The notes under the pieces are model-generated. The model was not told the origin of the DNA. It searched no databases and saw nothing but the letters and a program-made list of their open reading frames with translations. Below, in pieces: positions 10,775 through 62,838 of a stretch of DNA of 64,000 nucleotides (position 1 is the stretch's first letter; each line of letters begins with the position of its first letter). A program made the translations under genes and the position numbers. The stretch lies in assembly GCA_964035545.1 (NCBI GenBank), contig CAXIUT010000255.1:1-64000 (forward strand). Reading direction: 5' to 3'. The stretch comes from Bugula neritina. Lineage: Eukaryota; Animalia; Bryozoa.

Positions 10775-11974
10775 ATGAAAAATATTCATCGCCTACTACT
10801 CATAGTAGTACTGCTTGGTTGCATTGACGCCTACCGGTGCTCTAAAAAAGTTAACAACGTCATGAAGGGGTCGAACAACTTCATGAAAGGCAACAAAAAT
10901 CAACTTTATGGCAATGGAAATACTATGGTTGGAAACTACAACAAGTTTGCTGGAGACTTTAACTTTGGAGTTGGTGATGTTAATACCGTAGTTGGAAATG
11001 GAAATAAATTCAATGGAAACTACAATCAAGTCAAAGGAAATAAAAACAAATTCAAAGGAAATGCCAACAAAGTAGCTGGAAATTCTAATGAGTTCTTCGG
11101 AAGTTGCAATACTATCTTTGGAAGTGGAAACCAATTCAAAGGTAATGCTAACCAAGTAGCTGGAAATGGTAATCAGTTCTTGGGAAGTAACAATAAAGTC
11201 AAAGGACATCAAAACAAATTCAAAGGAAACTCCAACAAAATAGCTGGAAATTCTAATGAGTTCTTTGGAAGTGGTAATACAGTTTTTGGAAATCAAAATA
11301 AATTCAAAGGTAGCGCCAACAAAGTAGCTGGAAATTCTAATGATTTCCAAGGAAGTTTCAATACAGTTGTTGGTTCTGAAAATCAATTCAAAGGTAATGC
11401 TAACCAAGTAGCTGGAAATGGTCATCAGTTCATCGGAAGTAACAATAAAGTCAAGGGATATAAAAACAAATTCAAAGGAAGCTCCAACAAAATTGCTGGA
11501 TCAGGTAATTTCTTTGAAGGAAACAATAACATCATCTTTGGAAATGCCAACAAAGGCAAAGGTTCGAAGAACAAAATAGCTGGAAGTGGAAATGGCTTCT
11601 TAGGAAACTAAAATACCGTTGTTGGAAATTGCAATAAAATCAGAGGTCATAAAAACTCAGTCAAAGGATCAGGTAATCTTTTGAGTGGAAACAATAATGT
11701 CATGATTAGTGATCTTAATGGAGTTGCTCCTCCATTGCCAAGGCGACCAAGATGCAATAATAGCCGTCCTTATCCAATCAGACCACCAACATGTAGAGGA
11801 AGAGGTGGAAGAGGTGGAAGAGGCGGAAGATGTGGAAGAGGAAGAGGTGGAAGAGGAAGAAGAGGTGGAAGAGGAAGAGGAGGCTATAGAGGATATCGAG
11901 GAGGAAAAAGAGTATATAGAACTAGATGTTGTGGAGGAAAAAGATATTGTAGAGGAGGAAGATGCTACTGCTGA
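10775..11974 (+). CDS. Secreted NxVxG heptad-repeat protein 1 (399 aa) with Arg/Gly/Cys tail
   Basis: Signal peptide MKNIHRLLLIVVLLGCIDA, ~41 heptads, TAA at 11609 read as Glu joins two track ORFs, tail ends YCRGGRCYC-TGA. Confidence 0.9.
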
Positions 11975-12061: not shown

Positions 12062-12154
12062 GGGGTTGGGGTTGGGGTTGGGGTTGGGGTTGGGGTTGGG
12101 GTTGGGGTTGGGGTTGGGGTTGGGGTTGGGGTTGGGGTTGGGGTTGGGGTTGGG
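12062..12154. repeat. Internal telomeric array (GGGGTT)n
   Basis: ~15 perfect units about 90 nt after the protein 1 stop. Confidence 0.95.
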
Positions 12155-12862: not shown

Positions 12863-14563
12863 ATGAAAAATATTCATCGCCTACTACTCATAGTAGCACT
12901 GCTTAGTTGTCTTGATTCTTAACTGTTATATCCTTAGAGAACTAACAACATCTTGAAGGGGTCAAATAACTTCATGAAAGGTGACTAAAATTAGCTTTAT
13001 GGCAATAAAAATGTCATGGTTGGAGACTACAATAAATTTGCTGGAAATAGCAATGTAGGAATCGGCGACGATAATACTATAGTTGGAAATGATAATGGCC
13101 TCTTAGGAAGTTATAATACAGTTGTTGGAAATAAGAATCAGTTCAAAGGTGATGACAACAAAGTGGCTGGAAATAGCAATAAGTTCTTAGGAGATGAAAA
13201 TACAGTTATTGGAAATAGAAATAAATTCAAAGGAGATTCAAACAAGATACGTGGAAATGATAATGGCTTCTAGGGAAGTTAAAATACAGTTGTTGGAAAT
13301 AAGAATCAATTCAAAGGTGATTTCAACAAAGTGGCTGGAAATAGCAATAAGTTCTTAGGAGATGAAAATACAGTTATTGGAAATAGAAATAAATTCAAAG
13401 GAGATTCAAACAAGATACGTGGAAATGATAATGGCTTCTAGGGAAGTTATAATACAGTTGTTGGAAATAAGAATCAGTTCAAAGGTGATGACAACAAAGT
13501 GGCTGGAAATAGCAATAAGTTCTTAGGAGATGAAAATACAGTTATTGGACATAGAAATAAATTCAAAGGAGATTTAAACAAGATACGTGGAAATGATAAT
13601 GGCTTCTAGGGAAGTTAAAATACAGTTGTTGGAAATAAGAATCAATTCAAAGGTGATGACAACAAAGTGGCTGGAAATAGCAATAAGTTCTTAGGAGATG
13701 AAAATACAGTTATTGGAAATAGAAATAAATTCAAAGGAGATTCAAACAAGATACGTGGAAATGATAATGGCTTCTAGGGAAGTTATAATACAGTTGTTGG
13801 AAATAAGAATCAGTTCAAAGGTGATGACAACAAAGTGGCTGGAAATAGCAATAAGTTCTTAGGAGATGAAAATACAGTTATTGGACATAGAAATAAATTC
13901 AAAGGAGATTTAAACAAGATACGTGGAAATGATAATGGCTTCTAGGGAAGTTAAAATACAGTTGTTGGAAATAAGAATCAATTCAAAGGTGATTTCAACA
14001 AAGTGGCTGGAAATAGCAATAAGTTCTTAGGAGATGAAAATACAGTTATTGGACATAGAAATAAATTCAAAGGAGATTTAAATAAGATACGTGGAAATGA
14101 TAATAGTTTCAAAGGAAGTTACAATACAGTTGTTGGAAATAAGAATCAGTTTAAAGGTGATGACAACAAAATAGCTGGAAATAGTAATAAGTTCTTAGGA
14201 GATGAAAATATAGTTATTGGAAATAAAAATAAATTCAAAGGAGATTTTAATAAAGTTGTTGGAAGTTCTAATAATTTTTCAGGAAGTTTCAATTAGATCA
14301 AAGGGCATAAAAATAATTTCAAAGGTAGTTTTAACAAAATAGCTGGATCAGGCAATCTATTCAAAGGAAATAGTAATATAATTGTTGGAAATATAAACAC
14401 AGGAACAGGTTCTTTCAACAAAATCAAAGGGTTTGGAAATGGTTTTAAAGGAAACTTCAATAACATCGCTGGAAATTTAAATTCAGTCGTAGGTAATAAA
14501 AATTTTGTTCAAGGATCAGGAAATAGACTTAGCGGACATAATAACATCTTAATTAGTAAATGA
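12863..14563 (+). CDS. Secreted NxVxG heptad-repeat protein 2 (566 aa), no basic tail
   Basis: Signal peptide, ~77 heptads, continuous frame with TAR=Glu, ends NILISK-TGA. Confidence 0.88.
13091..14266. repeat. 168-nt (56 aa, 8 heptad) intragenic tandem repeat, ~7 copies
   Basis: GATAAT unit marker at 13091, 13259, 13427, 13595, 13763, 13931 and 14099. Confidence 0.9.
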
Positions 14564-16120: not shown

Positions 16121-17101
16121 ATGAAAAACATTCACCACCTATTACTCATAGTAGTGTTGCTTAGTTGTCTTGATGCCTCTAGGGTTTGTCCTAAAAGAAT
16201 TAACAACATCTTAAGAGGATCGAACAACTTCATGAAAGGCAACAGAAATCAACTTTATGGCAATGGAAATACCATGGTTGGAAATTACAACAAGTTCGCT
16301 GGAAATAGCAACTTTGGAATCGGTGATGCCAATATTCTAGTTGGAAGTGGAAATAAGTTCAGAGGAAACTACAATCAAATTAAAGGAAATGGAAATCAGT
16401 TCCAAGGTTCTGCCAACAAAGTAGCTGGAAATGGAAATGATTTCTTCGGAAGTTGCAATACTATCTTTGGAAGCGGAAACCAATTCAAAGGTAATGCTAA
16501 TCAAGTAGCTGGAAATAGTAATCAGTTCTTTGGAAGCGGCAACACAGTCGTTGGAAGAAGAAACAAATTCAGAGGTAATTCTAACAAAATACGTGGATCA
16601 GGTAATTCTTTCTTAGGAAATAGTAATACCATCTTTGGATTTGGAAACAAAGGAAGAGGTTCTGGTAACAGAGTTGCTGGAAGCGGAAACGGTTTCTTAG
16701 GAAACTTTAATACCATCGTTGGGAAGTGCAATAAAGTCAAAGGTCATAAAAATGCACTGAAAGGATCAGGAAATCTTCTCACTGGAGTCGGCAATGTCCT
16801 GATTAGTGATAATTATGGAACTCCTAGATTGCCAAGGCGACCAAGATGCAATATTAGACGTACTTGTCAAGGACCACGACGATGTGTAATCAGAAATGGT
16901 AGAAAAATATGCTATAGGCCAAAACGAGGAGGAAGAACTTGTCAAGGACCACGACGATGTGTAATCAGAAATGGTAGAAAAATATGCTATAGGCCAAAAC
17001 GAGGAGGAAGAAGAAACTGTAGATTATATAAAAGAGGAAGAAGATGTAACAGAAGAAGAACAAAAGTTTGCAGAGGAGGAAGATGTTACTACAGATGTTG
17101 A
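16121..17101 (+). CDS. Secreted NxVxG heptad-repeat protein 3 (326 aa) with Cys/Arg tail
   Basis: Signal peptide, ~29 heptads, duplicated TCQGPRRCVIRNGRKICYRPKRGGR module, ends CRGGRCYYRC. Confidence 0.92.
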   Translation: MKNIHHLLLIVVLLSCLDASRVCPKRINNILRGSNNFMKGNRNQLYGNGNTMVGNYNKFAGNSNFGIGDANILVGSGNKFRGNYNQIKGNGNQFQGSANKVAGNGNDFFGSCNTIFGSGNQFKGNANQVAGNSNQFFGSGNTVVGRRNKFRGNSNKIRGSGNSFLGNSNTIFGFGNKGRGSGNRVAGSGNGFLGNFNTIVGKCNKVKGHKNALKGSGNLLTGVGNVLISDNYGTPRLPRRPRCNIRRTCQGPRRCVIRNGRKICYRPKRGGRTCQGPRRCVIRNGRKICYRPKRGGRRNCRLYKRGRRCNRRRTKVCRGGRCYYRC

Positions 17102-17934: not shown

Positions 17935-18900
17935 ATGAAAACAGTTCAACACCTAGTCCTAATTGTAGTACTGCTTGGTTGTCTTGATGCCTCTACGATT
18001 CCTTCTTAATAGGTGAACAACATAATGAAGGGGTCTAACAACTTTATGAAGGGCAACAAAAATCAACTTTACGGAGATGGAAATTCAATGGTTGGAAATA
18101 AAAACAAATTTGCTGGAAATGACAATTTTGGAGTTGGAGATTCAAATATCCTAGTTGGAAATGGAAACATGTTCAAAGGTGACTAAAACAAAGTTAAAGG
18201 AAATGGAAATAAATTCAAAGGTACTGCTAACAAAGTAGCTGGTTCAGGGAATAAATTCTTAGGAAATCAGAATACTTTAATTGGAAATGGAAATAAGTTT
18301 AAAGGAAATAATAATAAAGTTGCTGGAAATGGAAATGGCTTTTAAGGAAATCGCAATACTATTATTGGAAATGGAAACCAAGGTTAAGGTTCTAATAACA
18401 AAATAGTTGGATCTGATAATGGCTTCGAAGGAGATTAAAATTTAATTGCAGGAAATGAAAACATGCTAAAAGGAAACGATAATACTATCATTGGACATAA
18501 TAATGCCATGAAAGGAGGAGGATACATTCTCCATGGAAACAAAAATACCATGATTTGTGAAGTATGTGGATCTCGTCCCCCTCCATTACCAGAGTTGCCA
18601 CCTTCTTATGAAAGACCGACTTCTTGTCTACCTCAAGGACTCCCACAACCATTTCAACAAAGAGGCAGAGGCAGAGGTAGAGGAAATAGAGGAAATAGAG
18701 GAGGTAGAGGAGGTAGAGGAAATAGAGGGAATAGAGGAGGTAGAAGAGGTAGAGGGAATAGAGGGAATAGAGGAAATAGAGGGAATAGAGGAGGTAGAAG
18801 AGGTAGAGGGAATAGAGGGAATAGAGGAAATAGAGGAAATAGAGGAGGTAGAGGATGTAGAGGAGGTAGAGGACAAACATATAGAGGTGGGTATTATTGA
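17935..18900 (+). CDS. Secreted NxVxG heptad-repeat protein 4 (321 aa) with (RGN/RGG)n tail
   Basis: MKTVQHLVLIVVLLGCLDA signal, ~26 heptads, Pro linker, RGNRGN repeats; in frame with track ORF 18463-18900. Confidence 0.9.
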
Positions 18901-18954: not shown

Positions 18955-19042
18955 GGGGTTGGGGTTGGGGTTGGGGTTGGGGTTGGGGTTGGGGTTGGGG
19001 TTGGGGTTGGGGTTGGGGTTGGGGTTGGGGTTGGGGTTGGGG
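18955..19042. repeat. Internal telomeric array (GGGGTT)n
   Basis: Perfect units about 55 nt after the protein 4 stop. Confidence 0.95.
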
Positions 19043-41111: not shown

Positions 41112-41180
41112 TATTATTCTTCTTCATCTTTTATTATCATCATAATACTATTTCTATTGAATAAATGATATTAGTTATAA

Positions 41181-42878: not shown

Positions 42879-42951
42879 ATAGCTATATTAATTATATCAA
42901 TATATCATATCATGTGATATCAACATTATATATGATAGTAAATGATGATAA

Positions 42952-43020
42952 GGGGTTGGGGTTGGGGTTGGGGTTGGGGTTGGGGTTGGGGTTGGGGTTG
43001 GGGTTGGGGTTGGGGTTGGG
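42952..43020. repeat. Internal telomeric array (GGGGTT)n
   Basis: Perfect units in the gap between the WD40 and TTLL genes. Confidence 0.95.
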
Positions 43021-43085
43021 ATAATATCAGCTATAATATAAGATACAATATCAGTTATAGTATCAGCTATAATATCAGCTATAAC
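43021..43085. repeat. 12-bp minisatellite ATAATATCAGCT, ~5 copies
   Basis: Directly abuts the telomeric array. Confidence 0.75.
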
Positions 43086-43098
43086 TATAAATAACAGT

Positions 43099-45276
43099 TC
43101 ATTCTTAATAGAAAAGTTAGAATTTGAGTGCGGCCAGTGAATCTGGAGGAAGTCTATGTTGCTATCGAGCAGGATAGTGATTATTGGGCGGAAGCAGTGG
43201 ATCAACACAAAACCGGATGGTTTGTTCTATTAGTCCGGGAATGACTCTATCAAGTACGTGTGAGTTATTTTCGAAGCAAGGGTTGTTATTGATTTAAAGG
43301 AGCCAGACTCCGAAATCTTAATCTAGTATAAAATCCAAGCCAAAGAGTTCGAAATTGCAAGCTTTTCTCTCTGGGTCTATTTGTCCTTTGACTGATTTCA
43401 AGACAGACAAAGCGATTTCTTTCATTTTGGGCACTATTCTTTCATAGATAGAATACTCACCATGTTATAAATTTAAATATTTTTGAAGGTCCCCGTATGA
43501 TAGCTTATTCCCTGGCTAGTATTTGCTATACTCTTATGATTCGATTTGAATGCGTCGTTGGTCAGGTGGATGTATTTGTTGCTTAGCCAGGCGTGCTGTT
43601 GCTCGTTGAATTGGTTTTTGAATTTCTTTGCTAAAGGGTTTCTGCAAGTTATCTTTGTTACAAAGTTGTATTTCAGGCTGCTCGTGCGAATATAGCCCTA
43701 CCTGTACCAAAAAGCTTTGAGGGAGCCGTTGATGCAGGTCAGAAGCATGTAGTGTCTGATATCGAATTTTCTATTGTGATAGAGTAGAGGATTTTATAGA
43801 TATGATTGTACTATAAAAGTCCATTTCTAGTGGTTATCTTACCATCTTTATTTTAGCCTTTTGAGAACTTTGCCTCCAGGTAGTATCTCTATCCCTTCTG
43901 CTCTACAACTTCTCTCTCCTGGCTTTATGATCCATAGCTTTTTTGGATCGACTTCTACGACGTGTTTGAAGAAATCTACTTGATTGCCTTATAGATTTTA
44001 GAAATGGAAACTTCTGGGAATGATGTTGAAGGGATTTTCGTCAATTACGTCTTAATAATAGGTTTGTATATTTTTAAGTAGATGTTTTTTGGTTGTGAAG
44101 GATTGAGTTCCTTGGATGTGGTTGGTTATTAACTAGAAGTGAAAAGGTTTTGCAAATATGGTATGATCTTAGGGTGTGAGTAATTGTTACACTGTTGATG
44201 ACTGTTATTCTGTCATTATTTTGCAATTTAGTTTGTGTCGATTGGATGTGAGTTCTTTTCTGAATTAAAATATTTTTGAACAGACCAAAGATTACCTGTC
44301 CATCTTTATCTACTATTTTTTGTTATTTTTATTTTTATCTTTTGATATTGATTTTTGTAGTTAGAAGAGATGTTGATTTTCGAGCTGGGTCCAATAGAGT
44401 TGACAACTTTATTTATCAGAAACAACTTATAGCCAGAATCGTCTTCTTAATAATTATTTTATCAATTAGTGATTATTACCTCTACCAACATATACTCTAT
44501 ACTTTTTGATTGGTGTTTAAACTGGCAATAAGCTCAAATCGATATATAGTCCATTAGAATAATTTACCTTATAAAGGTAATCTAAAAATATCTTCAATTT
44601 TATCTTATAATCTCCCTAGTAATCGACAGGATTAAAACTCATCACACGATGATGCTATCTCTTGCGGGCAGACACTATTGATCTGTTTGAATTATTTACA
44701 TTTGTTCTTGTTGTTTTGGCGCTGTGAATTCTTTTTGGAGTTAGCCTGTTGTCCAGGTCGTAGGCTGTAGAGGGTCGTTTTGATGGTTGTTAGGCTCTTT
44801 TTCCGACTAGACCTTAACATGTTAGATAGTTAAAAATCTTTTATTTTGGGTGGACTTTATCTGCCTGAATATACTACTGTTGCTCTTCTTTTATCTCTTA
44901 CATTGTGAGCGCTTTGTGATCTTTTGAAAGTTTTTTCTTTTATGTTTTTTATTTTTATTTTTATTTTTGATTTATCTTTTTATATTTTACATGGCGACCC
45001 AATAAGACTGATTTTTCCATTATTTTAAGTAGATAGCCATTCCTAGACAAGTTATTATTTTGATGGAGTATGCAGATGATGATATCGAATAGCTGATGGT
45101 TCTATATGAGCTTATTGTAAATATTTAGAATATTGTGAAGTAGTTTTGATGGCTTTACCTTTATCTTTTATTACTAGTTATAATCTACAAGCTGGTTGTT
45201 TGATTTTCATCTTGATCTTTATCTATCTATTTTATATGTTAAAATTATCAAATTATTTATATTCTATGTTATTCAT
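43099..45276 (-). CDS. Tubulin-tyrosine ligase-like (TTLL) protein
   Basis: WIIKPG, IVQSYLENPLLY..KFDIRHY, IHLTND, FELFGLDFILD..WLLEINNNP; start uncertain. Confidence 0.85.
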
Positions 45277-45294
45277 ATTGATGATTATCTATGC

Positions 45295-47246
45295 TCATAT
45301 CACTTTTGCACTTAGTATTTTTACGTTTATAAGTGGTTTTTAGGATTTATCGGTCTTTAGTTTGTTTATTTCGCAAGCTGTCTCGATCCCTTTGATTACT
45401 CGGCCGAAAATTGTGTGTTTGTTGTCTAGCCATGGACAGGCAATCACTGTTATAAAGAATTGAGAGCCATTGGTGTTGTGACCTCGATTGGCCATGGCAA
45501 GGACATATGGACGGTCAAATCGGTATCTTTATGGCCTGAGTTAGTCTTCAAAAGTGCCTCCCCAAATAGACTATCCTCCTGTTCCATCTCCTCTCGGGCA
45601 ACCACTCTGGATCATGAAGCCTTTGACTGATCGATGGAAGATCATTCCATTGTAGTATCCTTTTTTGGTCAGTTTTATGAAGTTTTAACATGTTTTTGGA
45701 CAGTCTTATAGGTAAAGTAGAACATGTATGTCTCCCATAGTTGTTTGAAGGACTACTTAATTTTGTTTTTAGATGATTTTAGGTTGAGTAACAGTCAATG
45801 ACTATTCTTTTGTATGTTTTTAGTTGATGATATCTCTGACTACGACAACTTCTGACTCGAGCTAGGGTGTTCTTCTGGAGAAGAGATAGAATCTTCCTCT
45901 TCTGAAGGCTGTGGCTATTATGAGAGGATCAGAAGCTTTTCTTTATCCATGTATGTTGGCATTTCCATTGGGATTTCTCATTTGTTTACCTTGGTAGACA
46001 CAAACTCGAACAAATCTTTCAGTTTATTTTTTACCAATAACTCTTTATATACATTTATTAAAAGTGAATATATTTTAATTCCATGAAATGAGCTATAAAT
46101 AACTAATCTTTATGATTAATCGGGGTTGGGGTTGGGGTTGGGGTTGGGGTTGGGGTTGGGGTTGGGGTTGGGGTTGGGGTTGGGTTTTCTTTTAGTATTC
46201 ATGTTCGTCTAAACTGAACATGGCGTGTTAAGGATGGGAGCTATCTTATTGAATCTTTATCGTTTATTTTATGTTTTATGATATTTCGTGTAGTAATTTA
46301 CCTGTTTTTAAGCTGAATATTCTTATTATTTTATCTTTTAGAAGTACTGCTAGATAGTTTCCTGAAGGACTTATGTTTAATGACAAAGGGATGCTATTGG
46401 CTTTAAGCAATTTGAGAAAATCTGTTTATATTTTGCATTTGTAGGCTAGATGGGTTGGAAAGTCAAATGTATTTGGATTCCATACTTCAATAAAGGCTCT
46501 TTAATCTATTGATATACAAATATTCAAATTCCAATTCATTTTGATAAATCTAATGGGATGCTTATGGAAAGATACCATATTTATTACATGAGTATCTTAT
46601 TTTTTAGTATCAATTTATTCTTTTTCATCGAGTTGGTTGCCTATTATCTCCTAATCATCTTATATCTCTTCAGTAGGAGAAGATTAAGGATCAATTATCC
46701 ATATTTTACCTGTCTTCTCTTAACTTATCGCTATTAAAGACCAATCTTTTGATTATTGAGATATAAATTAACAACAACTAGGAACAAAATTCAACTTTAG
46801 CGATAGTTTTAGGTCGCAGTTGAGAATATCAAATATTTTTAAGGTTTTATCCAATCCTACAGTACAAAGTAAATCATGATTTTTAGATAAAGAAGAGCCA
46901 GTGATAAGACCGCTATGAGCTTTAAAATTTTTAGTAAATTATACAAGGTTGAATACTTTTTTCCAGAACTTGATATGTCCATCAACGCTGAAAGTGATCA
47001 GCACATCTGTTTTAGAGGAACAAATGACGTTGTTGATAGTTTATCTGTGCATTAAACTGATTTAGTAGAGATCTGAGGAGGGAAGTCCATCCAAAAGAAG
47101 TTCTTGGTAGTCCACTTGATAGCATTAAATATACTTTTTTGGAGTTTACGAGTATCAGGTCCAATGATTTATTCTTCTTATGTTTGAAGAGGTCTTTTTT
47201 TAGACTATGGGTCATTTGGTACCTCTTTCTCTTATTATTTTTGCAT
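45295..47246 (-). CDS. PPWD1: WD40 plus cyclophilin protein, interrupted by telomeric repeats
   Basis: [70 protein letters not shown]. Confidence 0.9.
46122..46186. repeat. Internal telomeric array (GGGGTT)n inside PPWD1
   Basis: ~11 units with PPWD1 coding sequence on both sides. Confidence 0.95.
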
Positions 47247-48477: not shown

Positions 48478-48582
48478 TTTATATAGTTAAAAATATATAT
48501 AGAATAACATTCAAATTAAAGATGATTAATATCAATAAATAAGTGATAAAAATATATTAAATGCATTGTGATAGTTGATCAT

Positions 48583-51500
48583 TCATTGTACTAAGTCTGG
48601 TCTGCGATTTATGCGAATTTGTTGAAGATTTGTTCGACTGAAGCCTGCTTAATAGTATACTGTTGAATTCCGAAAGATTCTTTTTCTTTCTAGAAGAACG
48701 AGAACATCTTCCCGATATTAGGCTTTCCTCTTATCTTTAGTCGAATAAAAGTCTGTAGTCTCTATAACTCTTCAACATCGCCACCTAGTAGTTTCTTCAA
48801 CTCGTCTGTTACCTTTCTTAGCATTGCACAAATATGCAGATACTCAACTACGGTGTAGACTTAGATTTATTTTCTTGCCTTAAGAGTGAAGTAGATGTAA
48901 TTGCCTGCTCCTTTCTCAGAAATGCCTAACCTATCTTCAGGCTAAGCTTTGTAGGTTTAAAGGAAGTTATCAAGCTGTGAGTCTTTTATGATCTGAGGCT
49001 CTATCCTTCTGGCTCTCATTATCTAAAGTAGATTCCTTTTCTAAGGGTTTTTCAGTTTTAGTTAGACTTCAAGACCTTCTCCATACTTGTTCTTTATGTG
49101 TTGAGCAGTGCCAATACACTGGAAATTGCCTTTTACCATGATACCTAGTCTTGAAGAAAGAGCTTCAGCTTACTACATTGAGTGAGTGGTTAGAACAACT
49201 GTTGCATCTTTATTCTGAGTGGCTACTCTAGCTATAACTCTCCACATAAAGCGTCTTGCTCGAGGATCCATTCCTGTGGATGGTTCATCAAGAAAGACTA
49301 TCCGAGGATTGCCAATCATAGCCATAGCTACTGACAGTTTACGTTTGTTTCCTCCTGATAAAGTGCCTGATAGCTTGTCAGCGTATTAAGTCAAATCGAG
49401 TTCTTCTATTTTCCTGTTGATAGCGGCTTAACTGTTCTCTTGAGATAGAGATTTCAAGTCATAGAAGAGTTCTAGTTGTTATTTGACTGTCAGATTTTCA
49501 ATTAAGGCATCGAATTGAGGACAATAGCCTAAGTCTTATCGAACTAGGTCGATGTTATCACTGATTCTCAACCCTTTGAAGTAGCTTTAGCCTGCAGTCG
49601 ATGAAACTTAGCCTGCTAGCATCTTGAAAGTAGTTGTTTTGCCTGCTCCATTGATGCCAAGTAAACCAAAAACTTATCCTCTTTTGACTCCAAAGGAAAG
49701 ATTATCAACAGCTACTTTGTGCTTTTTAGGTCCATCAACCAGATATACTTTTCTGAGTTCTTTCGATAAAATTTAGTAGTCAGAAGGATTGGCAGCAATA
49801 GCTGTTTAGTTTTATCTTTTTACATCCTATTCTGCAATAACTTCTGTATCTGTAATTTATGCCTCAGAACGAGAGAGACATCTCATGCAAGACTATGTAT
49901 TTTGTAGCTTTTAGATCACAAGAAGAAGAATAAAGAATAGTACACTTTGTATCGCTAGGAATAATATAGGCGCCAATGCTATTTCAGTGTCAAATGTTTA
50001 CATTGTTTTTCCGTTATTTTAATTTTGACCATATATATTAACACTTCCAGTGTTAATGATTCCTTATCCGAAAGCAAAAGAAGGGTAGATTCGGAAGATC
50101 CAAGAAAGAGCTCTTCCGACTGAGTTTGAACTTTAGATAACTCTGAGGACGAAAGTGAAGATAGGTAATAGTCCTCCAAGAGTAAAAGTGATAAAATAGT
50201 AGGCTGCTTGTGCATTTCCATAGTCTTTGTAAATAAAAGCTGCCATATATGTGAAAGAAATATAAGATAGTCCATAAAAAATAAAGAGAAGCCAAGTCGC
50301 TGCAAAGGCTGATCCTTCTGTAATAGATTATATGGCCATAGCTTTTGCTATTCCAATGCCAATAGATGCTACTATGAAATAAAGGACAAAATCATAGATG
50401 AAGTTTGCTGTCCAGTAAGCAGAAATGCTCATTCCACTAACTATTTGTTGATGTTTCGACCTATCTTATCTTTCTTTGACTATGAAAGATATGATGGAAG
50501 CAAACTTGAAAGCCAAAGCAATTGAGAAGATGAAAGAAGCAAAGAATCCTGAGATAGCGTTATTAATCTGTAGTTGTTGGAATGTTCTTGGCATTGGATG
50601 GTTTGATACTGAGATTGTTACTGATCTGCCAAGATTTTGATTTAAAATAGTTTAAGATGCTAGACTACCTAAGAAAAATGGACTTGTAGGACTACGAGTA
50701 TGGACTAGAGTATTGTACTGATAGATAGTGTTTGCCCCACTTGTAGTTGTTGCATCAGCAAAGAAGACACCTCCTTTGAGAGTCGATTGAGCTTGTTTTT
50801 TTGGGAAAAGAAAGTTCTTATCGAAAGTAGCTGCAGTTGTATCAGTAGTGTCAGCCTGTACTGATATTTTAGATCCATATTTTCCATTGAGATATGTTTC
50901 TATATTGGTTGCTCTACTAGAAACATCTGCTCCGATAGGTACTACTACTGGATTTTGTTAACCTAGATAAGTGTCCAAGTCCATTGTTTGTTACGGGTAA
51001 TCTACAATAAATGATACTCTAAGTAAGAAAAGAGCAAGAAGAATGATGATAAAGGGTAAAACAAGTTCAAAGATAAAGCTTTTGATGTCTCTTAAAATTA
51101 CTCTTAGTCTTTTCAAGAAAGTGGCTTTGAAATGAATCCAGAATTTTAAAAGACAGCCTTCTTATCTTGGTATCCGATCAAAATCAACTATTGTTGCTTA
51201 ACTGTCGATCATCTTCTCATTTGAATATTCCTATTTTTTATTTGATATTAATTGGTTTTATTTGAGTTTCATTGGACTTCCTTGCCTTCTTGGACTTGAT
51301 TACTTGCTTTTGACTTAAATGATTTAATTTTCAATGAGTTAGTTAGCCTTTTAATGTTTTTCTTTTCTATTTTGTTCTACTTAAGCTCCTACATTCAGAA
51401 AAACTTCTTCAAGTGTTGTTATACTGATGCCATATTCAAGGTATCTTAGAGTGTTTTTTTTATCATCAAGTTATGCGAACATGTTCGGGAAGTGAGATAC

Positions 51501-53820
51501 ATCTACGATAGGTAGTTGCATGGCTAGGTCTGTTGCTACATTGGTTAGAACCTAGCAACCAGGCACATGCTTCTTGACTGTTTAGATAATTGGTCCTGAG
51601 TCTCTATCTGGAGAATCTTTGGTGAAGGTTATTGTGTATCCTACTCCAAACTTATTCTTGAGGAAGATGCTTGAACCGCAGCACATCAACTTTCCATCGC
51701 CCATAATACCAATCCTATCTCCTAAGTAATCGGCTTCGTCCATGAAGTGAGTAGTTAAAATAACTATTCTATCGTTTTTGTAGCTTTTAAGTAAGTCCCA
51801 GATATAACGTCTAGCAGAAGCATCCATTCCTGAGGTTGGCTCGTCTAAGATGATTACTTTCGATCTCCCTGCAAAGGCAATAGCAACTGATAGTCTTCTT
51901 TTCTGTCCTCCTGAAAGGTTCTTAGAATACTCTTCTCTTTTCTAGTTAAGGTTGACATCTGCTATTAGTCTCTAGACTTCATCTATCAGTTACTGTCCTT
52001 AAAGTCCTTTGAAAGAAGAAAATAGCTCAAGGTGCTATTGAACTGTCAGGTCCTAGTAGAGAGTATCATGTTGAGGACAGACTCCTAGATTCTATCTGAT
52101 TTTTTGAGTTTAGGTTTATCCTAGAACTGAGAGATACCCATCAGATGGAGATGTCATGCCTGATAGCATAGAAATAGAAGTAGTTTTTCCTGCTCCATTA
52201 TGTCCAAGTAAAGCAAATATCTGACCTTGGAACATACTAACAGTCAGGTCATCAACAGCTAGTGTAGAATCTGACCCACTTCCAAACTACTTTCTAAGTC
52301 CGACTATTTCAATAGCTCTGTTATGTTGTTCTTCTGCTACTAGGGCTTATTCAACTGGCTAGTACTTATCTGAGTAACCTGGTAGTAACTGCTTTTATCT
52401 TTTGCGTCTATTTTTTTATTATACAGAGATGCTGGTGTTGTCTGAATTGCAACAGAAGAGAGGATGACGTTTTGACCCCCATTCATTAGGGATGACCTGA
52501 TCGAGATACCATGTTAGAAATAGATAAAATATAGTATTAAGAACAAAACTTAGGAGTGCATATCCTATGACGTAGTGATTAGTGGTTGAACTAAAATCTG
52601 GAGTTATTTGGAAGCTTTAAGCATAGACCATAGTCTGGAAGGCTAAGACCATGGCTGCATGAGGAACAATACTAAGAGCTCCATTGACTCCGATTGAAGG
52701 ATTATCTGAATTGGTGGCAATAAAGGATAGAATATATTGAACGAGGAAGAAGAGCAAGGAGATGACAACACCTATTTTAGCTCTTGTAATAAAGACTTGT
52801 ATGAAGAAGACTTGAACAATAAGGACAATAGCAAAGAAGATATAGAGAATTAAGGGTATCATAATGGGTACATTGCTAAGAGATCGAACGAATAGAATCG
52901 AACAGAGTAAGCCAATTACTAGATAGACCATGAGGTATCGAAAGAACCAGCTGAAGAAGTATGTACTTCCTTTCATGCCCATAATATACATACTTTATCT
53001 GACTTTGGTCTATGTTATGTTATTTGTACCTCTTTCTAAGTGAGCATGATCGAAGTTTGTCTGAGATAGAGTAATAGAAGAGGCAGAACTACTAAAAATC
53101 CAACAAATCCTCCTAAATTCTCATAGATATTATCCAATGTGAATGTTTATTGGTAGAGTGGTGAGACATCATTTTGAAAATAGTTAGTATTTGCTGTTTA
53201 TACTTGAAGAATGGCGTTGTTGACTAGAGTATTAGCTCCTATCATTCCTTTTGATAAAGCTTTCTAATAAATTTCGAGATCAATTCCTTTATCTTGAGTT
53301 AGATCTAGTGTTGGAATCGGTCCATCTGTTCTATCTTCATTTAGACTGACATTAAACCTTAGTTTGTAGTCATAGTTTCCAGATGATGAACTCTGAACTG
53401 TTATACCGAAACACATTCTGACAGAGTTTTGATAATTTTCACTTCTGATGTAGGTTTAAAAATCAGATTAAGAACTAAAGATATTGGTAGAATATCCTAG
53501 ACCAGTTACTAAGCTGTCGATTCTTGTCACTAGAGCATCCCCAGCTGGTGCTAGTCCTATTTATTGATTGGTACAATTTCTTAATGGTTGAATAGATACT
53601 TAAGAAAAGATGAGTTTGCGTCGATACTTGTGATAGCGCGTGAATATTATGCGTTTCCGATGAAGGATTGTTCGTTAGTTGTGGTTGGAGCATCAATTCC
53701 TTTGATCACAGAAACAAAGAGGATGAAGATGACTGGTACTAGTATTTCTAGGATGTTTCCCAAAATTCCTCTTTTATAGAGTAGCCAGTTTTTGTAAAAC
53801 AGAGCTGAGAGCTGTCCCAT
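48583..53820 (-). CDS. ABCA-subfamily full transporter
   Basis: Two NBDs ([29 protein letters not shown] and [20 protein letters not shown]), [18 protein letters not shown], two TMDs. Confidence 0.95.
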
Positions 53821-54931: not shown

Positions 54932-55432
54932 TTGTATTAGATAAAATAATTATTGATGGATGGTTCTTCTAGAGCTAGAGTTACTTCAAACTAGAAGAAA
55001 GAACTTGGGATAACTTGAATCGACATCACTCATAATATTTTATGGAACAAATGAAAAAAAAAATAATTTCGACTTTAGAAAATATTAGAAAAAAAACATT
55101 TTATTTGATCAATATTAACTAATCCATCTTGTATCAGTCTTCATCAACAATATATATAAGAAGATAGTCAATGAAAAATCGTTTAATTTTACTTTTTCTT
55201 TTTTTCTTTTTAAAATCACTCAGTGAAAATAAACATCTTTAGAGCTAAATTTAAACTCCAATTAGGGTCTAGTTCTATATTATGTTTGAAATATTTATTC
55301 CCGATGGTAAATTCTTTTTAGAAACTTAATAAATAAGGTTTTCAGAACATTATAACTGATAATTAAAAGCAAGTGATTTTCTTAGATAAATGGAAGGTTT
55401 ATTTAGAATTCTTTACATTTATATTCTTCTAA

Positions 55433-58078
55433 ATGAAAGGAATCAAAGTCCTACTTCTGATAGTAGTACTTCTTGGTTCTCTTAACGCCTAGATGATCCA
55501 ACTTGGATCTGATAGCATCTTTAGTAGCATCACGAAGGGATCAGATAACTCCATTTTCGGAAATGGAAATTCCATGGGAGGAAGTCCCAGTTCAGAAGCT
55601 GGAGGTTCTATCCTTGGAATGGGAAATTCCATTGGAGGAAATCCTAGTTTAGAAACTGGAGGATCTAATCTTGGAATGGGAAATTCCATGGGAGGAAATC
55701 CTAGTTTAGAAACTGGAGGATCTAATCTTGGAATGGGAAATTCCATGGGAGGAAATCCTAGTTTAGAAACTGGAGGATCTAATCTTGGAATTGTTGGCAA
55801 TGGAAATATGCCAAAAGATAACTTAAATAGTATATTTGGAAATGGAAATAAAGATCCTGGTTCTGCCAACAATATTGATGGATCAAGTAATAGCCTCTTA
55901 GAAGATAGCAGTTCCATTGGTGGAAGTGGAAATATGCTCAGTGGAGATCTAAGTTCTATCTTTGGCAATGAAATTGCAGAAAATAATTGTCCAAATCAAC
56001 CATCACCACCACATCCTTAACCTTAACCTGAACCTCCACTACCACTACCACCACCTCCTTAACCTTAACCACCCCCTCCTTAGCCTTAACCTTACCCTTA
56101 ACCTGAACCTTAACCACCACTACCACCACATCCTTAACCTGAACCACCACCACCACCACAACCACCACCTTAACCTTAACCTTAACCACCACTACCACCA
56201 CATCCTTAACCTGAACCACCGCCACCACCACCACCACCACCACCACCATCACCACCACCACCACCACCACCACCACCACCACCACCACCACCACCACCAC
56301 CACCACCACCACCACCACCACCACCACCACCACCACCACCACCACCACCACCACCACCACCACCACCACCACCACCACCACCACCACCACCACCACCACC
56401 ACCACCACCACCACCACCACCTTAACCTTAACCACCACTACCACCACATCCTTAACCTGAACCACCGCCACCACCACCACCACCGCCACCACCACCACCA
56501 CCACCACCGCCACCACCACCACCACCACCACCACCACCACCACCACCACCACCACCACCACCACCACCACCACCACCACCACCACCACCACCACCACCAC
56601 CACCACTTCCTTAACCTGAACCACCACTACCACCACCACCACCACCACCACCACCACCACCACCACCACCACCACCACCACCACCACCACCACCACCACC
56701 ACCACCACCACCACCACCACCACCCCCTCCTTAACCTTAACCACCACTACCACCACTTCCACCACTTCCTTAACCTTAACCACCACTACCACCACTTCCT
56801 TAACCATAACCTGAACCTGAGCCTTCTTTCCCATCAGAACAACCTCCTCTTTAACCTCAACCTCCATCTTAACCGTTTCCCTAACCACCTTCACCACCAG
56901 GTAGAAGAGGGCCGCCAAGAAGAAAACCACCAGGTAGAAGAGGGCCGCCAAGAAGAAAACCACCAGGTAGAAGAGGGCCGCCAAGAAGAAAACCACCAGG
57001 TAGAAGAGGGCCGCCAAGAAGAAAACCACCAGGTAGAAGAGGGCCGCCAAGAAGAAAACCACCAGGTAGAAGAGGGCCGCCAAGAAGAAAACCACCAGGT
57101 AGAAGAAGGCCGCCAAGAAGAAAACCACCAGGTAGAAGAGGGCCAAGAAGAAAACCTTGTAGAGGAGGAAAATGTAGAAGAGGAGGAAAACCTAGAAGAG
57201 GAGGAAAATGTAGAAGAGGAGGAAAACCTAGAAGAGGAAGAAAACCTAGAAGAGGAAGAAAACCTAGAAGAGGAAGAAAACCTAGAAGAGGAAGAAAACC
57301 TAGAAGAGGAAGAAAACCTAGAAGAGGAAGAAAACCTAGAAGAGGAAGAAAACCTAGAAGAAGACATCCTTATAGAAATAGAAGACAACCAAGGAGAAGA
57401 AGACATCCTTATAGAAATAGAAGACAACCAAGGAGAAGAAGACATCCTCAAAGGAATAGAAGACAACCAAGGAGAAGAAGACATCCTCAAAGGAATAGAA
57501 GACAACCAAGGAGAAGAAGACATCCTCAAAGGAATAGAAGACAACCAAGGAGAAGAAGACATCCTCAAAGGAATAGAAGACAACCAAGGAGAAGAAGACA
57601 TCCTCAAAGGAATAGAAGACAACCAAGGAGAAGAAGACATCCTCAAAGGAATAGAAGACAACCAAGGAGAAGAAGACATCCTCAAAGGAATAGAAGACAA
57701 CCAAGGAGAAGAAGACATCCTCAAAGGAATAGAAGACAACCAAGGAGAAGAAGACATCCTCAAAGGAATAGAAGACAACCAAGGAGAAGACATCCTCAAA
57801 GGAATAGAAGACAACCAAGGAGAAGAAGACATCCTCAAAGGAATAGAAGACAACCAAGGAGAAGAAGACATCCTCAAAGGAATAGAAGACAACCAAGGAG
57901 AAGAAGACAACCAAGGAGACATCGACCAGCTCCCAGAAGACACAGATCCTCTCCTAGAAGACACAGACCCTCTCCCAGAAGACATAGACCAACTTCTAGA
58001 AGAGGTGGAGGAAGAAGAGGAGGAAGAAGAGGAGGAGGAAGAAGAAGAGGAGGAGGAGGAAGAAGAAGACGTAGATGA
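55433..58078 (+). CDS. Secreted block-repeat protein 5 (881 aa): G/N/S repeats, PE/poly-Pro, Arg-rich blocks
   Basis: Signal MKGIKVLLLIVVLLGSLNA; one continuous frame with TAA=Glu; ends RRRRR-TGA. Confidence 0.85.
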
Positions 58079-59756
58079 TCTACTATCTTTTACTTTTAAT
58101 CATATATTTTGGAGTCAAATAATACTAGTTAATTATTATTGATTCTTAACTATGAATTTAAAGAATAAAAGTTGATAAGATAATATTTATTATTAATAAA
58201 TCTATATTATATTTGAAAAAAAATCTATTAATAAAAATTAAGTTTGAATAATCAAGTGGAACAACTAATAAACTGTCAAAAAATTATTTTAGTTTTGATA
58301 AATAACTATTTTCAGTCATTAAGAGTCATTTTTTTAATCTTTTCTGACCAATAGCATCTATCAATATGGTGTCTTTGTTCTTTTTTACTTACTTTTTTGC
58401 TTTAAATCTTCAATTATTCTCATTTGCAGATTGAATTCTATCGAATTATGTTTTGATCTATCTGATTTTGAGACATTTTCACTACTTTTTTTGATTCTAA
58501 ATGATGTTTTTTGTTCTCTCTATCGATCTATTTTTATATCTAAAGATTAAATATCGCCTATTAAAAAAATAAACTACTTTATTCATGTTTGAAATATAAC
58601 TATTGATAGATGAAACTGTTGATAAGATATAACTATTGATAAGATATAGCTATTAATAAGATGAAACTATTGATAAGATGTAACTGTTGATAATGTATAA
58701 CTATTAATGAGATGCAACTGTTGATAAGATATAGTTGTCCAAAAGATATATTTGTGATCGATTCTTTACTATAAATATCACAGAAGAAGCTATCAGTCTT
58801 CTAAACAAACGCTTTGTACCTTCTAGTATTGTTTGATAAATCATATTCTTTGGCAACTACCTAAGACAGTTACTATCTTTGTCTAAAATCCTTTTTCTTT
58901 ATTTTAAATTTGAGATTGATTTTTTGTTTGAATTTTAATTCTTGGAATATTAAGTTAGTTAGCTGACTAAGTAGGCGGTGTCGACTGTGATAGTTAGCTC
59001 TCTTTTGTATCTCGCTTTGAAAGTATTGAGACCCCATTGATCTCCCAACCGACTAGCCAAGACTGATAACCTTGACTGCATGTTTTTTTTTATCTTTCAA
59101 AAGCTTCGAATCGATAAGCCAACTCTTTTCGATCTACAAGAAAGCTTTAATCTTGACTATTTGTTTTTATAAGTATCAACTCAATGTCATTGATGATCCT
59201 TTCGAAAAATAGTCTCTTAAAGACATCATCATAGACCAAGATTCTTGATTATCCATTTGTATTAGATAAAATAATTATTGATGGATGGTTCTTCTAGAGC
59301 TAGAGTTACTTCAAACTAGAAGAAAGAACTTGGGATAACTTGAATCGACATCACTCATAATATTTTATGGAACAAATGAAAAAAAAAATAATTTCGACTT
59401 TAGAAAATATTAGAAAAAAAACATTTTATTTGATCAATATTAACTAATCCATCTTGTATCAGTCTTCATCAACAATATATATAAGAAGATAGTCAATGAA
59501 AAATCGTTTAATTTTACTTTTTCTTTTTTTCTTTTTAAAATCACTCAGTGAAAATAAACATCTTTAGAGCTAAATTTAAACTCCAATTAGGGTCTAGTTC
59601 TATATTATGTTTGAAATATTTATTCCCGATGGTAAATTCTTTTTAGAAACTTAATAAATAAGGTTTTCAGAACATTATAACTGATAATTAAAAGCAAGTG
59701 ATTTTCTTCATAAATGGAAGATTTATTTAGAATTCTTTACATTTATATTCTTCTAA

Positions 59757-62000
59757 ATGAAAGGAATCAAAGTCCTACTTCTGATAGTAGTACTTCTTGG
59801 TTCTCTTAACGCCTAGATGATCCAACTTGGATCTGATAGCATCTTTAGTAGCATCACGAAGGGATCAGATAACTCCATTTTCGGAAATGGAAATTCCATG
59901 GGAGGAAGTCCCAGTCCAGAAGCTGGAGGTTCTATCCTTGGAATGGGAAATTCCATTGGAGGAAATCCTAGTTTAGAAACTGGAGGATCTAATCTTGGAA
60001 TGGGAAATTCCATTGGAGGAAATCCTAGTTTAGAAACTGGAGGATCTAATCTTGGAATGGGAAATTCCATGGGAGGAAATCCTAGTTTAGAAACTGGAGG
60101 ATCTAATCTTGGAATGGGAAATTCCATGGGAGGAAATCCTAGTTTAGAAACTGGAGGATCTAATCTTGGAATTGTTGGCAATGGAAATATGCCAAAAGAT
60201 AACTTAAATAGTATATTTGGAAATGGAAATAAAGATCCTGGTTCTGCCAACAATATTGATGGATCAAGTAATAGCCTCTTAGAAGATAGCAGTTCCATTG
60301 GTGGAAGTGGAAATATGCTCAGTGGAGATCTAAGTTCTATCTTTGGCAATGAAATTGCAGAAAATAATTGTCCAAATCAACCATCACCATCACCATCACC
60401 ATCACCATCACCATCACCATCACCATCACCATCACCATCACCATCACCATCACCATCACCATCACCATCACCATCACCATCACCATCACCATCACCATCA
60501 CCATCACCATCACCATCACCATCACCATCACCATCACCATCACCATCACCATCACCATCACCATCACCATCACCACCACCATCACCATCACCACCACCAC
60601 CACCACCACCACCACCACCACCACCACCACCACCTTAACCTTAACCACCACTACCACCACTACCACCACTACCACCACATCCTTAACCTGAACCACCACT
60701 ACCACCACTTCCACCACTTCCTTAACCTTAACCTTAACCTTAACCACCACTACCACCACTACCACCACTTCCTTAACCTGAACCTGAACCTGAACCACCA
60801 CTACCACCACTTCCACCACTTCCTTAACCTTAACCTGAACCTTAACCTGAACCACCACTACCACCACTACCACCACTTCCACCACTTCCTTAACCTTAAC
60901 CTTAACCACCACTACCACCACTTCCTTAACCATAACCTGAACCTGAGCCTTCTTTCCCATCAGAACAACCTCCTCTTTAACTTTAACCTCAACCTCCATC
61001 TTAACCGTTTCCCTAACCACCTTCACCAGGTAGAGGAGGAGGAGGAGGAGGAGGAGGAGGAGGAGGAAAACGTAGAGGAGGAGGAAAACGTAGAGGAGGA
61101 GGAAAAATGAGAAGAGGAGGAGGAAAACGTAGAGGAGGAGGAAAACGTAGAGGAGGAGGAAAAATGAGAAGAGGAGGAGGAAAACGTAGAGGAGGAGGAG
61201 GAAAAATGAGAAGAGGAGGAGGAGGAAAACGTAGAGGAGGAGGAAAACGTAGAGGAGGAGGAAAAAATGAGAAGAGGAGGAGGAAAACGTAGAAGAGGAG
61301 GAAAAATGAGAAGAGGAGGAGGAAAACGTAGAGGAGGAGGAAAACGTAGAGGAGGAGGAAAAATGAGAAGAGGAGGAGGAAAACGTAGAGGAGGAGGAGG
61401 AAAAATGAGAAGAGGAGGAGGAAAACGTAGAAGAGGAAGAAAACCTAGAAGAAATAGAAGACAACCTAGAAGAAATAGAAGACAACCTAGGAGAAGAAGA
61501 CATCCTAAAAGAAATAGAAGACAACCAAGGAGAAGAAGACAACCAAGAAGAAGAAGACAACCAAGGAGAAGAAGAAAACCTAGAAGAAAAAGACAACCAA
61601 GAAGAAGAAGACAACCAAGGAGAAGAAGAAAACCTAGAAGAAAAAGACAACCAAGAAGAAGAAGACAACCAAGAAGAAGAAGACAACCAAGGAGAAGAAG
61701 ACAGCCTAGAAGAAAAAGACAACCAAGGAGAAGAAGACAACCAAGGAGAAGAAGACAGCCAAGAAGAAAAGACAACCAAGGAGAAGAAGACATCCTCAAA
61801 GGAATAGAAGACAACCAAGGAGAAGAAGACAACCAAGGAGACATCGACCAGCTCCCAGAAGACACAGATCCTCTCCTAGAAGACACAGACCCTCTCCCAG
61901 AAGACATAGACCAACTTCTAGAAGAGGTGGAGGAAGAAGAGGAGGAAGAAGAGGAGGAGGAAGAAGAAGAGGAGGAGGAGGAAGAAGAAGACGTAGATGA
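59757..62000 (+). CDS. Secreted block-repeat protein 6 (~747 aa): G/N/S repeats, (SP)n, PE/Pro, Arg/Gly-rich blocks
   Basis: Paralog of protein 5; compensating +1 and -1 shifts near 61265 and 61768 leave ATG and TGA in frame. Confidence 0.8.
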
Positions 62001-62838
62001 TCTACTATCTTTTACTTTTAATCATATATTTTGGAGTCAAATAATACTAGTTAATTATTATTGATTCTTAACTATGAATTTAAAGAATAAAAGTTGATAA
62101 GATAATATTTATTATTAATAAATCTATATTATATTTGAAAAAAAATCTATTAATAAAAATTAAGTTTGAATAATCAAGTGGAACAACTAATAAACTGTCA
62201 AAAAATTATTTTAGTTTTGATAAATAACTATTTTCAGTCATTAAGAGTCATTTTTTTAATCTTTTCTGACCAATAGCATCTATCAATATGGTGTCTTTGT
62301 TCTTTTTTACTTACTTTTTTGCTTTAAATCTTCAATTATTCTCATTTGCAGATTGAATTCTATCGAATTATGTTTTGATCTATCTGATTTTGAGACATTT
62401 TCACTACTTTTTTTGATTCTAAATGATGTTTTTTGTTCTCTCTATCGATCTATTTTTATATCTAAAGATTAAATATCGCCTATTAAAAAAATAAACTACT
62501 TTATTCATGTGTTTTAATCAACTTTAGAAAACTTTTCAATATTTAATGATGTATTGATGATCATTTATCTTAAGAAAAATAATATTTTATTGATATAAAA
62601 TCATAAGTTAGATTAAATTTCTTCTGACAAACAATTTGATTTATTTTTTTTATAAAAAAATCAAATATTTTTCTTTTTTCGACATCTGAAAAAGGCATTT
62701 AATGTAAATGCTAAAAGCATAAATATGAATTAAATTAAATTAAAAATAATCGAAATATTAGCAATTAGTAGTATAAAAGTAAATAGGAGAATAATATGTT
62801 TATTCAATGATATATTATTTGATTGATCGTATTGATAG

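Follow-up and report, generated by a model that had tools for sequence, protein, structure and literature searches.

The window analyzed here, a stretch of 64,000 nucleotides from the forward strand of the Bugula neritina assembly GCA_964035545.1, is the first 64 kb of contig CAXIUT010000255.1 (hereafter C264), a chromosome of 92,586 bp in total. Toward its right-hand end lie two adjacent genes, p5 and p6, whose predicted products are a succession of compositional blocks: a leader, a head, a Pro-rich acidic rod and a polycationic tail. It had been proposed that these genes are distant members of a family of heptad-repeat proteins which have been rebuilt as block-copolymer proteins, and the features described in that original prediction were all found in p5 (55433-58078) and p6 (59757-62000), as follows.

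55370..55396, plus strand: family-specific upstream motif of p5 (CAAGTGATTTTCTTAGATAAATGGAAG)
55433..58078, plus strand: p5 coding region, 881 codons plus TGA, with TAA and TAG read as Glu and no intron needed
55433..55489, plus strand: predicted signal peptide of p5, MKGIKVLLLIVVLLGSLNA, with a basic n-region and a 12-residue hydrophobic core
55490..55999, plus strand: N-domain of p5, 170 aa, rich in Gly, Asn and Ser, net charge -12
55565-55791, plus strand: four 19-aa units of p5 (57 nt each), with about eight heptad relics after them
56000..56893, plus strand: Pro/Glu rod of p5, 298 aa including 234 Pro and 35 Glu, net charge -35
56894..58075, plus strand: polycationic tail of p5, 394 aa including 187 Arg and 19 Lys, with 0 Asp or Glu, net charge +206
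59695..59720, plus strand: upstream motif of p6
59757..62000, plus strand: p6 coding region (747 codons and a TGA stop in the assembled sequence), a tandem duplicate of p5
59757-59813, plus strand: predicted signal peptide of p6, MKGIKVLLLIVVLLGSLNA
59889..60172, plus strand: 19-aa units of p6 (57 nt, 5.0 copies by Tandem Repeats Finder)
60381..61028, plus strand: rod of p6, 216 aa, made of (SP)32, a run of 15 Pro and PPL/(PE)n blocks, net charge -29
61029..61997, plus strand: basic tail of p6, 323 aa, net charge +144 as assembled
61262..61267, plus strand: A6 run at which the Arg frame of p6 leaves the ATG frame (A5 in sister units)
61767..61770, plus strand: A4 run at which the Arg frame of p6 rejoins the ATG frame (A5 in sister units)

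The rod of p5 contains Pro runs of up to 57 residues along with (PE)n blocks, and its tail is assembled from units of three types, PPGRRGPPRRK (eight copies), PRRGRK (twelve copies) and HPQRNRRQPRRRR (fourteen copies), before the C-terminal end RRGGGRRGGRRGGGRRRGGGGRRRRR. The repeat units originally listed, namely the 19-aa repeat, poly-Pro, (SP)n and the 33-, 18- and 39-nt tail units, were borne out by Tandem Repeats Finder. In p5, this program delineated the 57-nt array of the 19-aa unit (4.0 copies), the Pro run as (ACC) x208 and, in the tail, arrays of 33 nt (PPGRRGPPRRK, 8.1 copies), 18 nt (PRRGRK, 11.9 copies) and 39 nt (HPQRNRRQPRRRR, 14.3 copies). In p6, the (SP)n array was resolved as (ACCATC) x50, and the tail runs from RRGGGK(M) units through a K/T/E-rich middle and QPRRRR units to a C-terminus identical to that of p5.

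A single-chromosome family of putatively exported proteins

The leader of both proteins follows the pattern MK.I..LLLIVVLLG.L.A, which is homologous across a family of nine genes (p1 to p9). As anticipated, the leader MKGIKVLLLIVVLLGSLNA of p5 and p6 aligns with those of p1-p4 at both the protein and the DNA level. Its assignment as a signal peptide, judged by eye from the n-region and the hydrophobic core, would make p5 and p6 exported proteins. Along with the leader, the nine genes have in common an upstream motif, CAAGTGATTTT(N4-6)ATAAATGGAAG, which is present at p5 and p6 about 40-60 nt before the ATG. The retention of this motif had also been predicted, and in its strict form it has seven matches in the 216-Mb assembly, all seven before family genes on C264, while the reversed control gave 0.

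Homology of the N-terminal part to p1-p4 had been named as a test of the original prediction, and it proved significant by alignment. By BLASTP, the p5 head is significantly similar to p1 and p3 (E = 9e-16 and 4e-14, respectively), and the presumed heptad relics are genuine, as about eight heptads of the p5 N-domain align in register with the true heptads of p9, p1 and p3, from which the 19-aa units depart. An intermediate form is provided by p9, whose head, in a six-frame search, matches p1, p3 and p4 at 59-67% identity and p5 at 52% (1.7e-11). Because of the leader, the upstream motif, the N-terminal similarity, the conserved C-terminus and this intermediate paralogue, sequence comparison supports the assignment of p5 and p6, as diverged relatives, to this putatively exported family of nine genes on one chromosome, and the same evidence upholds their description as distant heptad proteins with a block-copolymer organization.

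In the ancestral head, the counterpart of the 19-aa unit of p5-p7 is a single irregular 7+7+5 stretch (NTMVGNxNKFAGxxNxGxG), the hydrophobic positions of which have been lost in the unit. By this alignment, the 19-aa array is a single piece of the ancestral solenoid which has been amplified in tandem and degraded. It had been suggested that a 19-aa repeat replaced the solenoid core; the repeat is real, but the unit, being itself an amplified piece of solenoid, does not amount to a replacement.

The other members of the family are listed below; the C264 coordinates of p7-p9 continue the numbering of the window.

10775..11974, plus strand: p1, heptad solenoid and RG/Cys-rich basic tail; match to PF21300 at 4.3e-20
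12863..14563, plus strand: p2, long heptad solenoid, without basic tail
16121..17101, plus strand: p3, heptad solenoid and Cys/Arg tail; match to PF21300 at 4.6e-13
17935..18900, plus strand: p4, heptad solenoid and RGN/RGG tail
68405-70198, beyond the window: p7, a 91% identical cousin of p5
76784-77851, beyond the window: p8, head reduced to a vestige
79858-82209, beyond the window: p9, p5-type leader, true heptad head, CPSGN repeats, rod and (PRRPRKPRC)n tail

The rod of p9 is of the poly-Pro/PEPEP type with Cys at regular spacing. The longest solenoid of the family belongs to p2, with about 70 heptads arranged in near-identical 63-aa super-repeats; this protein ends directly past an ILISK motif and is the sole member without a basic tail. 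Family-like matches were also obtained on contig C5 of the animal host (~12,237,000-12,240,500). They were rejected as genes, since they correspond to a 21-nt satellite read in frame, which has no stop for over 1000 codons and passes for heptad-family sequence when all six frames are searched (E ~1e-12).

Repeat turnover between p5 and p6

Comparison of p5 and p6 reveals near-identity on both sides of entirely different arrays. Only 4 substitutions separate their 1.43-kb 5' flanks (the flanks overall being 99.7-100% identical), the heads are distinguished by one position and one 57-nt unit, and over the final 501 nt, a stretch that takes in the 3' flank, there is no difference. The intervening 2 kb has been wholly re-made, with different unit numbers. 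Relationships between the arrays can still be recognized, as the 6-nt units coding for the poly-Pro of p5 and for the (SP)32 of p6 are one transition apart, and the 18-nt units coding for PRRGRK in p5 and RRGGGK in p6 are clearly related. That p5 and p6 are recent tandem duplicates is the best explanation of these sequences.

Variation was also found in public sequence data. While the C-terminal end and the 3' flank show zero differences in public contigs from four runs and three studies, an in-frame deletion of 3 nt (one GGA fewer) is present at window position 61388, in the p6 tail, in contigs of two runs (X1 and X3). The near-identical flanks, the re-made arrays and this in-frame length variant together indicate that the arrays evolve by slippage and homogenization, far faster than by point mutation. 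As judged from these comparisons, it is the composition and the charge pattern that persist, and not the sequence.

Genetic code and chromosomal setting

Telomeres are present at both ends of C264, as C4A2 repeats on one side and G4T2 repeats on the other, which identifies it as a complete ciliate somatic chromosome. The assembly that contains it (216 Mb, 321 contigs) includes several contigs of tens of Mb with intron-rich animal genes. The large contigs (C1-C9), which look like those of a non-human animal host, carry intron-split animal haem peroxidase genes, and matches to the peroxidase profiles PF03098 and PF00141 are confined to these large host contigs, whereas ciliate chromosomes are found among the small contigs. 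It follows that the ciliate has been carried along in the assembly of an animal genome, and it is possibly an epibiont. The locus is also present, with 100% identity over the comparable parts, in public runs labeled as three organisms from three studies.

This ciliate uses the peritrich code (NCBI table 30), in which TAA and TAG are read as Glu and translation stops at TGA alone. The test was based on one gene, coding for an ABCA transporter (window 48579-52991, minus strand), which is open over 1470 codons with TGA as sole stop. In the comparison with human ABCA1/3/4, five of seven TAA/TAG codons fall at E or D and none of the seven at Q. The five comprise a TAG-TAA pair at HSM-xx-AEAL (HSMEECEAL in human ABCA1/3/4; MDEA in the first nucleotide-binding domain) and three of the five such codons in a second stretch of the gene, where the other two are at variable positions. 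In addition, p9 codes its PEPEP blocks by GAA where p5-p7 have TAA. The reading of TAA and TAG as Gln (table 6) was rejected on the basis of the ABCA motif alignments and of these GAA-coded blocks. Since TAA and TAG are Glu, the rod truly reads as acidic PEPEP, in line with the acidic block initially described.

A tRNA search of the assembly gave best matches of host or organellar type, so that ciliate nuclear tRNAs were not reached, and no UUA or CUA anticodon was found among them. At least 11 tRNA genes are clustered in 1.2 kb of a small contig (C214, ~41,000-45,400); this cluster looks organellar or bacterial, and not ciliate nuclear.

Reading frame of the rods and tails

With TGA as the sole stop, long open reading frames (ORFs) densely fill the window, and the frame in which the repeats are read has to be established on other grounds. 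Among the possible frames, the ATG frame alone has no internal TGA in any of the nine family genes. In p5, p7, p8 and p9, it runs from the leader through the head into the tail unshifted, despite wholly different array lengths and units, and p5-p9 all end with RRGGGRRG.RRRR, followed by TGA and by a conserved start of the 3' untranslated region. The competing His/Glu (+1) frame, in contrast, is interrupted by TGA stops in p6, which favors the Arg frame on a point that had been left to further tests. The frame call for the tails is based on the continuity with the leader, the conserved C-terminus and p6. For the heads of p5 and p7, which provide 27 differences only, dN/dS is 0.42 in the ATG frame as compared to 1.3 and 0.9 in the shifted frames. 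Furthermore, all tandem-repeat periods that Tandem Repeats Finder determined within the coding regions are divisible by 3.

Between p5 and p6 (58594-58733) lies an intergenic tandem array with a period of 17 (51) nt, on the opposite strand to a 200-aa ORF. On the minus strand, antisense frames over the rod and the tail (55938-58319 and 60319-62241) are open for 640-790 codons and read as poly-Val and Ser/Phe-rich strings; they result from the TGA-only code and the skew in base composition, and nothing in them points to a gene.

It could be argued that the rods and tails are not translated as read, the genes (p6 above all) being in decay or the arrays being minisatellite DNA left open by a TGA-only code, with a short or absent product. 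Several facts would fit this explanation and thereby count against the Arg-frame reading. The His/Glu frame is open over most of p5, p7, p8 and p9; several frames, antisense ones included, are open for hundreds of codons; the arrays are hypervariable; a continuous Arg-frame reading of p6 as assembled needs two homopolymer frame changes; and none of the public runs in which the locus occurs is on record as RNA. Since a TGA-only code leaves other frames, even antisense, largely open, the openness of a frame alone proves little. However, decay or chance would have to account for the unbroken ATG frame from the leader to the conserved C-terminus and stop in p5, p7, p8 and p9, for array periods that are all multiples of 3 when the nearby intergenic array has a period of 17, for a length variant of exactly 3 nt in other samples and for the basic tails of the non-repetitive relatives p1, p3 and p4. 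That the rods and tails are not translated as read is considered quite improbable, and genuine protein-coding genes are the best explanation of the p5 and p6 sequences.

The two frame changes of p6, at the A6 and A4 runs, may be real decay or homopolymer assembly errors. Over 60960-62150, public short-read contigs from four runs and three studies break in the repeats and bridge neither site. One variant public contig at the second site (61767-61770) has four additional nucleotides (ATAG) and 5 mismatches, and probably derives from a paralogue. Between the two sites, the ATG frame is open and reads as a Lys/Thr/Glu-rich sequence, so the predicted p6 product is basic in either case.

Head fold and search for relatives

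The heads of p1 and p3 match the Pfam family PF21300 (LbR_Ice_bind) with 72.1 and 49.5 bits, both above the curated cut-off of 30 bits. The p3 head is modeled as a regular beta-solenoid, with a predicted local distance difference test (pLDDT) score of 79.4 and a predicted template modeling score (pTM) of 0.72. Exhaustive structural comparison relates this model to beta-helical adhesins, antifreeze proteins and the heads of trimeric autotransporters (BpaC, AtaA), and places it at 33% identity with the Lolium ice-binding protein 3ULT. A Foldseek search of the same head against the PDB had returned leucine-rich repeat matches only (TM ~0.3), which were spurious and have been superseded by the exhaustive aligner.

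A head profile searched against 1.84 billion representative proteins retrieved the heptad module in 689 proteins, including bacterial adhesins, phage fibres and RING-finger proteins. No close relative was found in this set, and none of the best 30 of the 689 proteins has a basic tail. Pfam searches (E<=1) gave no match for p5 (55493-56017) or p6 (59817-60638), nor for a 395-aa piece covering the p5 tail. Homologue searches with p3 and with the p5 tail found nothing, a scan of metagenome contigs with the family alignment yielded no relative, and a search of the ESM Atlas with the p5 tail gave scores of <=0.80, at the level of noise. A full-text literature search retrieved no description of such proteins, nor of peritrich stalk-matrix proteins. 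On the basis of these sequence searches, the leader-head-rod-tail architecture is without database relative, that is, orphan and lineage-restricted.

Proposed function

A mechanism can be proposed in which p5 and p6 would form secreted fibrils whose tail is anchored on polyanionic material, with a role as matrix or glue. It is the reading that we favor, although tentatively. The plan of the family would consist of the leader, a left-handed beta-roll head of NxVxGxx heptads, an optional Pro-rich rod and a polycationic tail. In p5-p8, the head would have shrunk and partly decayed, with amplification of a single 19-aa segment. The inserted rod, of polyproline-II type and containing acidic (PE)n or (SP)n segments, would measure ~300 aa and span ~90 nm if fully extended, and the Arg-rich tail would have grown to 320-390 residues. 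After export, the tail would bind electrostatically to polyanionic material, the candidates being the cell's own coat, the matrix of the stalk or holdfast, the surface of a host, or the acidic rods of neighboring molecules. The stiff rod would then hold the head off the tail-bound material, resulting in a head-stalk-anchor fibril able to build or glue an extracellular matrix. In this model, the stiffness and length of the rod derive from polyproline-II geometry, while the electrostatic anchoring and the matrix role are suggested by the architecture together with the lifestyle of peritrichs, which are sessile or epibiotic.

Several observations weigh against this mechanism. For p5-p7, the notion of a head in the head-stalk-anchor scheme is made less convincing by the p5 head, for which no fold is predicted (AlphaFold2 pLDDT 37.6). 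The net charge, +161, is far from balanced, so that self-coacervation would need a further polyanion. Cys and Tyr are nearly absent from p5 and p6 (0-3 Tyr), leaving little for covalent cross-linking. Finally, the identity and lifestyle of the organism, on which part of the argument depends, are deduced from the genetic code and the telomeres only.

The proteins p5 and p6 can be compared with several known systems. Extensins, the Chlamydomonas protein GP1 and the Volvox pherophorins are secreted proteins in which (SP)n and long Pro runs form polyproline-II rods between modules. The (SP)32 of p6 and the Pro runs of up to 57 residues of p5 resemble them in composition only. Both p5 and p6 lack SPPPP-type units and Tyr cross-link motifs and belong to an unrelated lineage; the Pfam extensin models gave no match, including with the piece of p6 that contains (SP)n. 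Sandcastle-worm cement polycations and diatom silaffins are likewise exported, repetitive and extreme in charge, with fast-evolving repeats. They differ in relying on Lys, Gly, Tyr or His, on phosphoserine partners or on modified Lys, whereas the charge of the present tails is unmodified-looking Arg, accompanied by Pro; no Ser-rich acidic partner was identified here, and no sequence similarity was found.

Local likeness also exists to Bac7, PR-39, the (EP)n-(KP)n rod of TonB and EP procyclin, in the form of PRRPRKP strings and of PEPEPEP followed by basic X-Pro repeats. The family tails are, however, 10-20x longer, and no cathelin or TonB domain, glycosylphosphatidylinositol (GPI) signal or homology was found. 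With regard to protamines and the precursors of Pro-Arg peptides, p5 has no P1/P2 or cathelin domain, and its 394-residue tail stands behind a putative signal peptide. The likenesses to extensins, protamines, silaffins, worm cement, Bac7 and TonB are thus to be read as compositional only, and the membership tests that could be run for the compared systems failed.

The head-stalk-anchor adhesins (YadA, BpaC, AtaA and fungal proteins) follow the same logic as the family, with a long stiff spacer placed between a beta-roll head and an anchoring end, but by analogy only. Their spacer is a coiled coil or a Ser/Thr stalk instead of polyproline/(PE)n, and their anchor is a membrane barrel or GPI, where an Arg tail is proposed here; no sign of trimerization was seen in the family.

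Apart from the matrix role, it has been considered that the Pro/Arg tails act as antimicrobial or prey-handling polycations which, whole or after dibasic cleavage, would agglutinate or kill bacteria in food vacuoles or in the medium, the acidic rod being a neutralizing pro-piece. Peritrichs are bacterivorous, and the signal peptide would be compatible with a lysosomal or phagosomal route. The tail units PRRPRKPRCPRRPRRP of p9 and HPQRNRRQPRRRR of p5 are similar in composition to Bac7 and PR-39, and their tandem arrangement recalls multi-peptide precursors. Yet Pro runs of up to 57 residues, rods of 200-300 aa and a beta-roll head have no known counterpart in the precursors of antimicrobial peptides, an acidic block of -35 is far too small against a tail of +206, and neither Pfam nor sequence searches gave a match to any antimicrobial-peptide family. 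The units are also not conserved among paralogues, which would be unusual for peptides with a defined target, and this function appears improbable.

The same degree of doubt applies to the proposal that p5 and p6 are cargo or condensing agents of dense secretory granules (extrusomes or mucocyst-like organelles), which would be packed with acidic partners and swell or stick on release. The leader, the extreme charge blocks and the putatively co-regulated tandem family would suit such a role, but the granule proteins known from Paramecium (TMPs) and Tetrahymena (Grl) are acidic, structured and unrelated to these genes, and neither a motif for the processing of a pro-peptide nor a gene for a partner protein could be identified.

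Ice binding, which is suggested by the Pfam name of the head domain ("Grass antifreeze beta roll", PF21300, matched by p1 and p3) and by the 33% identity with 3ULT, can hardly be entertained, because the heptad module is shared by adhesins, phage fibres and RING proteins in their hundreds, so that the beta-roll fold does not imply it, and because p5 and p6 fail PF21300, the p5 head being one that is not predicted to fold, the outward residues are Lys, Phe and Gln instead of a flat Thr/Ser/Val face, and a tail of +200 has no role in antifreeze action. The kinship with PF21300 and 3ULT lies in the xxNxVxG heptad, which is used by the p1-p4 and p9 heads. Neither the p5 nor the p6 head fits the model, no grass or bacterial protein among the best 30 profile matches has a Pro rod or a polycationic tail, and no ice-binding face is evident.

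The favored reading, that of a secreted fibril with a tail anchored on polyanionic material, can be related to the known anatomy of peritrichs. The stalk of Vorticella comprises an extracellular sheath, a fibrillar matrix and stiffening batonnets, the protein composition of which is not given in the stalk review (PMC6189993). The extracellular composition of the peritrich stalk and holdfast appears undescribed in the accessible literature, and the p5/p6 family provides testable candidates. In a bolder version, which is rather unlikely, this family would represent the first molecularly defined parts of the peritrich extracellular attachment apparatus (stalk sheath, fibrillar matrix or holdfast cement). 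It would act as a self-assembling polyampholyte fibril in which the +200 Arg tail complexes the acidic polyproline rods of neighbors and anionic surfaces, and it would have evolved stepwise from a beta-roll adhesin to a disordered charge-block glue by means of hypermutable coding minisatellites.

At present, the function of p5 and p6 is a candidate and not a discovery; with a known beta-roll module as their basis, the proteins would be an orphan variation on the theme of secreted, low-complexity matrix or adhesive proteins. Provided that it is translated as read, p5 would rank with the most extreme charge-block proteins found in nature. The nine paralogues can be ordered in a gradation that starts with a folded beta-roll carrying a short basic tail and ends with a rod-and-tail protein of almost entirely low complexity, and the family would constitute a clean natural example of how a structured secreted protein becomes a compositional polymer through repeat turnover. 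The p5/p6 family could also serve as templates for the design of underwater adhesives or coacervates.

Internal telomeric repeats of the chromosome

In addition to its terminal telomeres, C264 contains eight internal (GGGGTT)n tracts of 52-93 nt, which all have one common orientation.

12062-12154, 18955-19042, 42952-43020 and 46122-46184: internal (GGGGTT)n tracts in the window
68133, 70358, 70822 and 78015: internal (GGGGTT)n tracts beyond the window (C264 coordinates)

Several of these tracts are located 55-165 nt past the stop codons of p1, p4, p7 and p8, and one lies within a PPWD1-like gene. They are not simple end-to-end joins of chromosomes, since no C4A2 tract comes after them, and may be alternative fragmentation sites that have been written into the consensus.

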